In this document: positions 61,853 to 64,000 of the stretch, one piece after another
How the letters are laid out: each line of letters begins with the position of its first letter
Numbering within the stretch: position 1 is the first letter of the stretch
Assembly (NCBI RefSeq): GCF_964204865.1
Contig: NC_135258.1
Coordinates: 12,586,001-12,650,000, forward strand
DNA length: 64,000 bases
DNA from: Styela clava
Lineage: Eukaryota
Direction: 5' to 3'
Notes under the pieces: model-generated
Databases searched by the model: none
What the model was told of the DNA's origin: nothing
Seen by the model: the letters and a program-made list of their open reading frames with translations, nothing else
Translations under genes and position numbers: made by a program

Positions 61853-62044
61853 TCATAGCTCATCATGATTTTGTTCCTTGCCTTCTGGACGTTTGAATGC
61901 TCCAAGCTGATACATGACACCACTTTTCATGTTTTTGATCAGGAAGATGAAAGGATGATCCGCATAAAACATAATTCTTTTGTCAGCAGGTGTACGGTTG
62001 GCTTCTTCGCGCTCTGCCTGAACCAATCCCCCTAGAGGATTCAC
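61853..62044 (-). CDS. Serpin alternative RCL/C-terminal exon B (non-inhibitory, HSP47-like, HDEL)
   Basis: Acceptor ATTCAG|GTG in phase 0 with the donor after ..HKGVLE; encodes [63 protein letters not shown]. Confidence 0.85.
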   Translation of the reverse strand: [63 protein letters not shown]

Positions 62045-62099
62045 CTGAATTACCATAAGTAAAATATTACTATTTTAATATCACCAGCATACCTGTATC

Positions 62100-64000
62100 C
62101 TACAGTTCTTGATGACTCATTTCTGTGCCTTCAGGTCGTACAAACCGGCCCAGAAAGAGTATCTGGCGAATTTTGTTGTGATGTATCATCCATATGAATG
62201 GATGATCAGCAAAATATCTGATGGCAAGATCAAGTGAGCGTGCCATAATCCGGACAGTGGTGGCCGCAGCCGCCGTGCTGCCCTCTTCAGTAACCTGATG
62301 GAAATTGTATAAGATTCACTAGTATTCAATAATATTCTCCTAAACTGAAAAAATGTCAAACTTGCCTCTAGTACACCTTTGTGAAAAATGGCATCAACGA
62401 AGAGTGATTTGTCACCACTTATTCCAGATAGGTCTGCTTGGCCGGATGAAAATATATCTTTGATTCCCAGGTTTTGCAATGATTTTTGAAGTTCAATGCC
62501 AGCCTCCACTTTAAATTTTGGTAATGTGATCTAAAATCAACACAATCATGAACTGATTTAATCGAGATTTCAGTAAAGATGTAATTCCTGCATAGCGATG
62601 AAGGTTGTAACCCACATAATCGTGTATATATTTAAGCATTTGAAATAAAATCGTGTTTTTCTATACTTTAACGAATATAATTGAATTACTCAGTATTGTC
62701 ATAACCAACCCAACTGATGACCATAAGACAGACTTGATTAAAAATTCATATTTAAATAGATTTGATCATGTACATTATTTGAAGAAATTGAGACTTACGT
62801 CAACAGTTTCGTATTCCATGTTGGAAATCCAATTGGTAAGGTTCTCATAGTTTAAGTTCTTCTCAACAGATGCAAGATCAAAATTGTCCGGCAGGAAAAG
62901 ATACATGCTGATATCTTGGCCAACGTAAGGCAATTCCAAAACCTGAAGATTCAATGATTCAATATACCGAAAACGAAACTTTCCTGTAAAAATTAGAAAT
63001 AAGAATTACTTAAAATTTACATTATGTATACAATACTTATTTCCTAAATTGGTTTAAAAAAATGAAACGCTTCTCTCGCTCACCTCGTTGATACATGAAG
63101 TGAGTATTGATAACTCTGTAATGAGACACATAAAATGCTCTTTCATCAGTGTGCATTGGTGAAAAGCCAGAGTGCCATTCACCAGTAAAATAAAGGGTGT
63201 TGACAAGGACCAAAGCAGTTGTCGCATCTAGATCGTCATCGTTGAGCATATTTGGAATGAGGTCGCCAGTTTCTTGAGAGATCCATTTATTAATGTGAGA
63301 TACAGATGTCTTGTCCCCAAAATCCAACTGTAAAAAGAATTAAGTCTAATTATTATATGAACACTCTCATATTAGCATGCAATGTAAGTTTATATACACA
63401 CATCTTCAATTTTCGCTCCAAACACTGAGAGAGCATTTCTATAGTCATTCAACACACTGGCAGTCTTTGAAATGAATGCTCCATTCGCACCTTTCAGGGT
63501 GATGTTGTCTTTAGGCTACAAAAAAAGTTTGGCATAAAAAACATACATAAGTAAAAACCCATAAAATGAAATGTGTATATTTTTTGATTCTGAGAATTGT
63601 ATGAAAATATTAATATAGTCTAAGATTACCTTGTCAAAAAGAAGTCCATTCAGTTCACCAAATGCTGAATTGATTAGTGATGCTTCAACATCTTTTAAAT
63701 GAAGGGCTTCTGCAATTTGTTTAGTGGAATTTTCTTTCGTTCCTAACTTCACCATTGCCAAAGCTGTTAAATAGTGCAATTTCATTACAAGTCATAATAT
63801 TACCATTTTCAATAATTTCGTAAGGGATTGCAACATCTTTAAAAAATGAAAGCGATATTATTGCTTATAATATCATTATACTCTTATACAAGATAGACAA
63901 ACCTGCTGAGACGCTGACTGGAGAGAATACCACATTTACTGTTTTGGGTTGTGCAATAATTTCCCTGTAGAGATCCACAGCGAACTTCGAATTTGCTGCT
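62100..64000 (-). CDS. Serpin isoform A (inhibitory RCL, C-terminal HQEL); 5' end beyond window; exons >64000-63903, 63763-63630, 63515-63402, 63327-63084, 62983-62799, 62530-62366, 62294-62100
   Basis: Serpin motifs NVVFSPVSV, INKWISQET..IPNML, LVLVNTLYFTGEW, QVLELPY, ITLPKFK, ADLSGIS. Last coding exon: VTEEGSTAAAATTVRIMARSLDLAIRYFADHPFIWMIHHNKIRQILFLGRFVRPEGTEMSHQEL*. Confidence 0.9.

Follow-up and report, generated by a model that had tools for sequence, protein, structure and literature searches.

Background

Serpin genes with several cassettes are well known; in Drosophila Spn4, alternative exons for the reactive-centre loop (RCL) enable one gene to give rise to several loops. The described system closest to the gene reported here is the ascidian serpin group U6, published together with the two RCL-exon variants Ci-Spn-10A and Ci-Spn-10B of Ciona (Kumar and Bhandari 2014, PMC4150122); as stated in that paper, no urochordate serpin is orthologous to a vertebrate serpin. 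HSP47 (SERPINH1), the collagen chaperone, is described as vertebrate-specific and missing from urochordates (PMC5583329, PMC10119292), and the way in which invertebrates fold and export procollagen without it is presented as an open question (PMC10119292). Here a serpin gene is described from a 64,000-nucleotide stretch of Styela clava DNA (contig NC_135258.1, positions 12,586,001 to 12,650,000; this whole stretch is hereafter the window). The gene lies on the minus strand at 61853-64104, numbered from the first base of the window, and comprises six exons common to both forms and, at its end, two alternative coding modules, 7A and 7B, which provide the protein with two different C-terminal tails. 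An original prediction made from the letters of the window had proposed it as a possible proto-HSP47, reflecting an ancestral state from which HSP47 arose by losing the inhibitory exon.

Judged by its sequence, the gene is an ascidian U6 serpin with predicted retention in the endoplasmic reticulum (ER), of the same kind as Ciona Ci-Spn-10. It probably yields an inhibitor (form A) and a non-inhibitory protein of the ER lumen (form B) through alternative acceptors served by one GC donor, and this is the reading that we favour. Since Ci-Spn-10A/B have been published, the two-tailed architecture was known before, and the present gene is a new member of a kind already known from Ciona, found in a distant tunicate. 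Added here are transcript evidence for one GC donor with two acceptors, and a natural B-only duplicate that is under constraint. The B tail moreover appears to be conserved across ascidians as a module of non-inhibitory appearance, and B alone seems to unite the Arg, Tyr and Asp of HSP47's key collagen contacts. In the literature searched, no print account was found of a non-inhibitory B form, of HSP47 contacts in B, of the GC-donor mechanism or of a B-only duplicate.

Gene structure and splicing

Contigs of four public sequencing runs (X1, X5, X9 and X16) were aligned to positions 61700-64000. Runs X1, X5 and X9, which represent three studies, contained spliced contigs, while X16 was colinear with genomic DNA. 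The gene has seven coding exons separated by six introns in phases 1, 0, 0, 1, 0 and 0. The exon boundaries given below correspond to all of the joints in the spliced contigs of X1, X5 and X9, in which each of the five constitutive introns is cleanly skipped and has GT..AG ends on the minus strand. Boundaries read from the minus-strand frames also agree at every junction with a 411-residue database model, P0244, which is made up of exons 1-6 and 7B. P0244 matches the Pfam Serpin profile (PF00079) with 339.2 bits (cut-off 27; E 4e-101) over profile positions 2-370 of 370.

Exon 1 (63903-64104, of which 63903..64000 lies in the window) encodes a hydrophobic N-terminus that resembles a signal peptide, followed by the start of the serpin body, and it ends in phase 1. 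Its extent is based on the joint 63763/63903 in X1, X5 and X9 and equals residues 1-67 of P0244, and its start codon (64102-64104, or L001:1102-1104) is situated 104 bases outside the window, on the sequence L001, which extends 9 kb past the window's end. The extent originally assigned to the gene, 61853-63327, does lie within it, but the gene continues past the window to this ATG. Exon 2 (63630..63763) is bounded by the joints 63763/63903 and 63515/63630, and exon 3 (63402..63515) by 63515/63630 and 63327/63402, each of them present in X1, X5 and X9 and in agreement with P0244. Exon 4 (63084..63327) contains the string DERAFYV, the Arg codon of which (63139-63141) is Arg213 of P0244 and aligns with HSP47 Arg222. 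It ends after base 1 of the Gly232 codon, in phase 1, at the position known in the literature as intron 225a; the joint (62982/63083, cut +1) skips 100 bases in X1, X5 and X9. Exon 5 (62799..62983), whose joints are likewise found in spliced contigs, carries FLPDN at the place of the HSP47 His273/His274 pair. Exon 6 (62366..62530), the last shared exon, ends in HKGVLE, has Thr295 aligned with HSP47 Ser305, and takes part in the joints 62530/62799, 62293/62365 and 62043/62365.

Two different skips leave exon 6, and both are present in all three of the spliced runs. The first removes 71 bases (intron 62295-62365) and joins the proximal acceptor of module 7A (62100..62294; 64 codons plus a stop at 62100-62102). 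The second removes 321 bases (62045-62365) and joins the distal acceptor of module 7B (61853..62044; 63 codons plus a stop). Both joints carry a 3-base ambiguity, and usable splice ends are obtained only with a GC..AG intron, so that one weak GC donor (62364-62365) feeds two acceptors 250 bases apart. A weak donor thus stands exactly where the choice between the two tails is made.

Contigs of the A form in X5 and X9 continue colinearly from 7A into 7B (62017-62214 in X5 and 62017-62293 in X9), and the mRNA of form A therefore has 7B as 3' untranslated sequence. In X1 alone, an optional 61-base GT-AG intron (62032..62092; joint 62030/62092, cut +1) is removed from this untranslated region, reaching from 7 bases (62093-62099) past the 7A stop to 13 bases inside 7B. 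A 3' untranslated region common to both forms occupies 61700..61852 and is covered by X1, X5 and X9 contigs that extend from 62043/62046 to 61700, the edge of the examined stretch, and beyond. The choice of tail is effectively a choice between alternative acceptors.

Placement among the ascidian U6 serpins

When tail B was searched against a library of 1,835,955,588 representatives, 11 proteins were recovered at E 0.001 or better: four B tails, one A-tail fragment and six others, the full-length Ciona savignyi serpin P0002 being among them. No HSP47 was found in this search at that threshold, and the likeness of the tail to HSP47 is therefore not significant at library scale. A U6 set was gathered by a search with P0002 and then with a seven-sequence profile, against which its members (from Ciona intestinalis, C. 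savignyi, Phallusia mammillata, Clavelina lepadiformis and one more source) scored 518-769 bits. P0244 scored 518 bits, and the best single-domain non-tunicate proteins, which are clade-B serpins, about 345 bits. In a 60-row alignment P0244 was 41-51% identical to eight ascidian U6 rows and at most 39% identical to the other 51 rows. A quick maximum-likelihood (ML) tree of 50 rows and 340 columns, from which the tails were excluded, placed the 8 U6 rows including P0244 on one branch with a Shimodaira-Hasegawa-like approximate likelihood ratio (SH-aLRT) support of 100, and the U6 clade was supported at 100/99 in a more careful tree without P0244. The original suggestion that the DNA came from an invertebrate chordate agrees with the position of the gene inside an ascidian serpin clade.

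The Ciona members (Ci-Spn-9, Ci-Spn-10A/10B and Cs-Spn-2; PMC4150122) fall in the same clade and resemble the window gene in most other respects. According to that paper the U6 introns lie at 60a, 106c, 144c, 225a, 283c and 339a. The window gene has six body introns as well, of which the first five fit the phases a, c, c, a and c, although only 225a was mapped residue by residue; the last is a phase-0 GC-AG intron here as opposed to 339a. Both genes further have a signal-peptide-like N-terminus, ends of the HDEL/HDEF type and two alternative RCL exons, with Arg-Ser given for P1-P1' of the A form in PMC4150122. The pairing of a C-terminal ER-retention signal with two alternative RCL exons, which is the trait pair of U6, is thereby present. 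P0002 of C. savignyi has a B tail and P0012 of C. intestinalis (408 residues) an A tail. In Phallusia the two models P0014 and P0016 have one common body with a B tail or an A tail.

The window gene also differs from its Ciona relatives. The identity of just 41-51% indicates that it comes from a distant tunicate. Tail A ends in HQEL here and in HDEF in Ciona, and the flanking genes are dipeptidyl peptidase III and an acetyl-CoA transporter here as against F-box-like and WD40 genes in the published Ciona account. A second, B-only copy is present in the window genome, and no discussion of the B hinge or of a likeness to HSP47 was found in the results and tables of PMC4150122.

Comparison of the two tails

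Tail A carries the canonical inhibitory hinge EEGSTAAAATT followed by strands s1C, s4B and s5B and the end HQEL, and counting from the hinge predicts Arg-Ser as its P1-P1' pair. Its best matches in the PDB are inhibitory serpins, aligned from the first residue through the hinge, and exon 7A alone matches the Pfam Serpin profile with 41.3 bits (E 1.5e-10, positions 317-370). Tail B has a charged, non-canonical hinge, the motif RPEG and the end HDEL, so that KDEL-type signals terminate both forms.

The eight B tails, which come from at least five sources, and the second copy have the consensus G-G-x-V-x-A-E-R-x-[ED]-A-x-basic, then [VF]-Y-A-D-H-P-F, then G-A/S-x-K-R-P-x-G and HDEL. The elements GG, V, AER, EA, the basic residue, YADHPF, KRP-x-G and HDEL are common to 8/8 B tails, and the Tyr of YADHPF occurs in all eight and in none of six A tails. 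The same kind of tail is carried by annotated models of three named species and by P0244.

In inhibitory serpins, the residues that become buried in sheet A on loop insertion are small and uncharged. The B hinge has Val at P12, Glu at P9 and Arg at P8 in 8/8 B tails, together with an acidic P6, and set against these hinge rules the residues make loop insertion unlikely for form B. An AlphaFold2 model built on the 60-row alignment is a confident native serpin (mean predicted local distance difference test, pLDDT, 92.4; template modelling scores of 0.80-0.87 against serpin structures) in which loop residues 357-365 are helical, with a block pLDDT of 83-91. On the basis of the established hinge rules and this predicted structure, form B is very probably non-inhibitory.

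The weak GC donor after exon 6 is joined either to the proximal acceptor, giving tail A, or to the distal acceptor, giving tail B, and each tail supplies its own RCL, strands s1C, s4B and s5B and retention signal. Under the favoured reading, because of its canonical hinge and predicted Arg-Ser pair, form A would be expected to act as a suicide inhibitor of an Arg-specific serine protease in the secretory pathway. Form B, lacking loop insertion, would act as a non-inhibitory binding protein or chaperone of the ER lumen. Triple-helical collagen would be one candidate client of form B among several, because equivalents of Arg222, Thr/Ser305, Tyr383 and Asp385 appear to line the corresponding surface, evidence that does not single collagen out. 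Were collagen not bound, form B would still appear to be a conserved, non-inhibitory-looking ER serpin.

Several points weigh against this reading. The runs X1, X5 and X9 are labelled 'RNA?' as a guess, and it is the splice joints from which their RNA nature is inferred. The abundances of A and B cannot be ranked from contig depth, the case for a non-inhibitory B comes from hinge rules and a predicted structure, and the signal peptide is a reading of the sequence. The Ciona table of PMC4150122, moreover, gives Pro-Leu as P1-P1' of form B, as for an inhibitor.

A second, B-only copy of the gene

A second copy is located 7.4 Mb away on the same contig, also on the minus strand (G000:C10:5149953-5152150, or L002:2953-5150), within a duplicate about 4.2 kb long that has a DNA identity of 87-96%. 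A 93-base deletion, equivalent to window positions 62094-62186, has removed the last 29 codons of its 7A together with the stop. Exons 2-6 and 7B have all remained open, with 16 amino-acid differences in 343 codons relative to the window gene, a synonymous divergence (dS) of 0.084 and a ratio of nonsynonymous to synonymous divergence (dN/dS) of 0.26. Two of the 63 residues encoded by the B exon are changed, and B is under constraint even where A has been lost. The second copy has the same GC donor letters, as judged from an identical translation over the boundary.

The idea that exon B is the decaying product of a duplication of exon A and has no function of its own is scarcely credible: the two modules are 48% identical over 44 residues and stand in tandem as in an exon duplication, but B is open and conserved in 8/8 sources, is spliced in three studies, is found in the annotated models of three species and forms the sole intact tail of the constrained second copy.

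Residues shared with HSP47

The proposal that U6 is the tunicate counterpart of clade H, that form B binds triple-helical collagen and that HSP47 arose by loss of the inhibitory module is unlikely. The natural B-only copy speaks for it, as do the residues that drew attention to the gene. HSP47 contact residues (Arg222, Tyr245, Met271, His273, His274, Val275, Ser305, Leu381, Phe382, Tyr383 and Asp385) were taken from PMC8301893 and PMC7877763. The human Serpin H1 chain aligns without gaps to fish HSP47 P0056, so that human numbering equals the P0056 index + 11, and the numbering is validated by Ser305, which is the Ser of 'ISLPK'. The C-terminus and the DNRGFMV string of human HSP47, as given in the original prediction, agree with this chain.

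All strings quoted in the original prediction are in the sequence on the minus strand, DERAFYV in exon 4 and FLPDN in exon 5, and the observation behind it is confirmed as real. At HSP47 positions 220, 222, 225, 238, 273, 274, 381, 383 and 385, a 220-row alignment shows the residues D, R, Y, Y, D, N, M, Y and D for the window protein. Asp220 and Arg222 are thus kept as had been claimed, as are in exon B the equivalents of Tyr383 and Asp385 (Tyr375, codon 61964-61966, and Asp377, codon 61958-61960), while His238 is replaced by Tyr, the His273/274 pair is absent and exon A has Phe at the Tyr383 position, its Tyr-Phe preceding ADHPF. Met225 and Leu381 are not retained. Across U6, Arg222 is found in 8/9 rows, Tyr383 in 5/5 B rows and 0/4 A rows, and Asp385 in 8/9, and the Ser305 equivalent is Thr, Ser or Ala.

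Two candidate features were rejected. Asp220 occurs in 2/9 U6 rows only and is unconserved on either side. The 'REE' that had been noted in exon B is indeed present there, but the corresponding residues are RAE, RSD or RVE in the remaining B tails, and the motif is missing from fish HSP47.

Among 205 other serpins, a background collected for its similarity to U6 and consisting largely of clade B, Arg occurs at 222 in 8 and Tyr at 383 in 2, and no sequence has both, which is an argument for a relation to HSP47. Window form B has 5 of the 11 interface positions (R, F, F, Y and D) and other B rows have 4-6; fish HSP47 has 11 and SERPINH2 has 10, and the background sequences score 0-3 in 190 cases, 4 in 14 and 5 in one. 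Of 33 columns in which six clade-H rows do not vary and whose residue is below 10% in the background, the window protein matches 10 and other U6 rows 4-9, compared with a background mean of 1.0 and maximum of 5, again in favour of the proposal. Five of these 10 matches, however, are Tyr383 and the retention extension, which are prone to convergence, and in the body only Arg222 recurs over U6. The absence of the His273/274 pair, to which pH-dependent release of the client is ascribed in HSP47, extends over the group, with Asp and Asn in the window protein and Glu/Asp at 273 and Asn at 274 in other U6 rows (one row has His at 274), and Leu381 is variable; fish HSP47 itself has Tyr-His at 273/274.

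Both tails, HSP47 and SERPINH2 have a P/A-x-G extension followed by an end of the [R/H]DEL type, and the ending HDEL, which is that of lamprey HSP47 (PMC5583329) and of fish SERPINH2, adds to the case for kinship. Taken together, the window gene resembles HSP47 and SERPINH2 in ER residence, signal peptide and the '[K/R]-P-x-G ... [R/H]DEL' extension, in a form B loop that does not look inhibitory, in the equivalents of Arg222, Tyr383 and Asp385, in Thr for Ser305, in intron 225a and in one identical stretch of ten residues. Form B shares with clade H a non-inhibitory loop (inferred from hinge rules), a signal peptide and an ER-retention signal. The differences are an overall identity of 27-28%, the lack of Leu381, Met271 and the His pair, an unrelated hinge sequence, and the fact that the window gene additionally yields a canonical inhibitor.

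Database searches, introns and synteny

The four best PDB matches of tail B are all HSP47 (30.1-30.2 bits, E 4e-6), which counts in favour of the proto-HSP47 proposal. HSP47 heads this list because no inhibitory serpin aligns to the B hinge, and tail A scores almost equally against HSP47 (29.3 bits versus 30.2). For the shared body, HSP47 was not among the best 60 PDB matches of exon 4 or exon 5 nor among the best 120 matches of the U6 profile, and the 27-28% identity to HSP47 compares with 34-35% to SERPINB1 and antithrombin. Foldseek scored all serpins alike and was not discriminating; SERPINB1 and antithrombin led its ranking, and HSP47 appeared from rank 17 onwards. A search of the ESM Atlas with the tail returned generic serpin fragments only. 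A library search with fish HSP47 gave 600 matches, the best 120 of which were all fish HSP47, so that distant relatives were not visible. In a search of the window's own genome with HSP47 no clear orthologue was found, exon 7B scoring above E 0.001; the best matches, at 83 and 78 bits, were a pair of intron-poor serpins, on C13 and C17 respectively, which come first because their exons are long, exon-by-exon scores not being comparable between genes.

Between exons 4 and 5, a phase-1 intron interrupts a Gly codon that aligns with HSP47 Gly241. The gene structure of HSP47 is 192a, 225a and 300c, with exon sizes of 99, 233 and 303 bp (PMC5583329); these sizes, taken with the 418-residue human protein, place 225a after base 1 of codon 241 and 192a in codon 208. 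The same intron is named 225a in U6 and in HSP47 (PMC4150122, PMC5583329), and PMC4150122 reports it as common to U6 and the vertebrate group V6, HSP47 being the sole vertebrate group that has it, which again favours kinship. The sites of 192a, within exon 4, and of 300c, within exon 6, which were located from the published exon sizes, are nevertheless uninterrupted here, and five other introns are present.

The vertebrate SERPINH1 neighbourhood includes RPS3, MOGAT2/DGAT2 and others (PMC5583329). Of two marker families searched, Ribosomal_S3_C matched on C18 and the DAGAT family on C5, while the serpin lies on C10, so that no synteny with the tested markers was found.

Phylogenetic position of U6

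The careful tree was built from the body only (46 rows, 345 columns, LG+C20). The trees contained neither antithrombin, neuroserpin, lamprey HSP47 nor amphioxus and echinoderm ER serpins, and clades C, D, F and G were left out. In the best careful tree U6 and clade H formed one branch, as the proto-HSP47 proposal would have it, but the support was 42/47. Constraining U6 to join clade B cost 0.00 log-likelihood units (p of the approximately unbiased test, p-AU, 0.51), and when four rows were added U6 moved beside B with a support of 56. A robust grouping of U6 with a clade other than H was likewise not found in this ML phylogeny, which had been suggested as a check in the original prediction. 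U6, H, B and the rest form a polytomy in these body-only trees, and the groupings U6+H and U6+B appear equally likely.

In a tree of the tails only (39 columns), B joined the SERPINH2 tail (99/94) and then A (96/73), and the tails of HSP47 H1 were placed elsewhere; the first of these branches is in favour of the proposal and the position of the H1 tails is against it. AU tests on the tails rejected neither B+H (p 0.215) nor B+A (p 0.132). The grouping of the SERPINH2 and B tails could reflect either convergent short ER-retention extensions or a trace of an ancestral clade-H tail. The SERPINH2 tail (P0084) has 'G-A', 'E-G' and HDEL in common with tunicate B tails.

The closest proteins for the shared body and tail A are clade B (SERPINB1/leukocyte elastase inhibitor and SERPINB9) and antithrombin, at 34-38% identity. 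They provide the top Foldseek and hidden Markov model matches and share a two-residue insertion near position 173. Clade B, in contrast, has no signal peptide or ER signal and has a longer loop after 'LP' in exon 5, antithrombin is secreted, and both are without alternative RCL exons.

The proto-HSP47 proposal is partly supported, in that there is a gene with one inhibitory and one very probably non-inhibitory ER product, the equivalents of Arg222, Tyr383 and Asp385, and intron 225a; descent of HSP47 from such a gene is left unsupported by the trees, the higher similarity to clade B and antithrombin, 5 of 11 contacts, one of three introns and the tested synteny markers. The likeness to HSP47 is real but narrow, too thin for common descent or collagen binding. 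It is unlikely that tunicates would have a working HSP47 counterpart in the form of U6 B, holding procollagen via Arg213, Thr295, Tyr375 and Asp377, with clade H derived from a B-only copy. If form B were such a counterpart, HSP47 would be no vertebrate invention, and its inhibitory past would be visible in a living gene.

Two unlikely readings: form B as an inhibitor, and U6 as an old secretory lineage

Form B could also be read as inhibiting proteases in spite of its unusual hinge, and thus as giving the gene a second specificity like the RCL cassettes of insects and nematodes. In keeping with this, the loop length is preserved, with 27 residues from the start of the exon to before ADHPF as compared with 28 in A, the distal loop of B tails keeps a basic residue, and a P1-P1' pair is listed for Ci-Spn-10B in PMC4150122. 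Against it stand the conserved Glu at P9, Arg at P8 and acidic P6, where small uncharged residues are needed, the loop predicted as an ordered helix, and the PDB matches of tail B, in which no inhibitory serpin aligns to the hinge and which begin at query residue 13 or later, mostly 24-29. This explanation is consequently improbable in our judgement. The PDB entry 'Serine protease inhibitor 4, isoform B' was among the matches of both tails and of exon 5, with low scores (21.2 bits for exon 5 and 13.2 bits for 7B), and the alternative module here differs from that of Drosophila Spn4 and the secretory-pathway serpins in swapping the whole hinge and giving a form that looks non-inhibitory.

A further explanation, which we also hold to be quite unlikely, is that U6 belongs to an old lineage of secretory-pathway serpins whose HSP47-like traits are convergent from ER residence. 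The KDEL-bearing Spn-1 of amphioxus and the HEEL-bearing Spn-1 of sea urchin have been proposed as neuroserpin orthologues (PMC2556349). The window gene resembles these as an ER-retained inhibitor with P1 Arg, and its signal-peptide-like N-terminus, its KDEL-type end and, in form A, a P1 Arg with Ser after it are traits named in that paper. The two-residue insertion near position 173 is likewise in the form found in V1, V3 and V5 (43 residues) and not in that of HSP47 H1 (41 residues), and coelacanth SERPINI2 has P-E-G after strand s5B. The insertion was rejected as evidence against clade H, fish SERPINH2 having the 43-residue long form too, and it does not separate that clade as a whole from U6. 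Linkage to PDCD10, the head-to-head neighbour by which this lineage is defined, was not found either, the only PDC10_C matches being at C8:15297572-15298247 with the serpin on C10 and an acetyl-CoA transporter gene as the head-to-head neighbour. There is, in addition, no dibasic Lys-Arg before the scissile bond, and SERPINI2 and PAI-1 stood apart from U6 in all trees, amphioxus, sea-urchin and neuroserpin sequences being outside them. The reading of the gene as a U6 serpin with an inhibitory and a non-inhibitory ER form is preferred over these alternatives.

Neighbouring genes and other serpin loci

Dipeptidyl peptidase III is encoded on the plus strand at 58377-60518 by an uninterrupted frame of 713 codons (Peptidase_M49, E 7e-230) and is apparently intronless, as opposed to the six introns of the adjoining serpin gene. 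A single-exon frame of 153 codons at 56666-57127, also on the plus strand, encodes a ubiquitin-conjugating enzyme (UQ_con, E 2e-31). On the other side, about 2.7 kb upstream of the serpin start and head-to-head with it, lies the acetyl-CoA transporter gene (L001:3778-6049, equivalent to 64778-67049, plus strand; Acatn, best exon E 1e-38), whose product is an ER membrane protein. A PhyH-like exon follows on the minus strand at L001:7797-8099.

About eight further serpin loci were observed in the genome, on C5, C6, C8, C13 and C17, with clusters on C5 at 12.28-12.39 Mb and 14.31 Mb. The two intron-poor serpin genes are at C13:14231302 and C17:6467253, and the open frame on C17, which has 694 codons, may represent a tandem or fused serpin. 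Outside this genome, the 814-residue protein P0004 was matched by tail B at seven places via 'EHPFLQMVKNQGTG'. It contains about eleven near-identical repeats of about 69 residues and looks like a repeat array derived from a serpin s4B fragment.

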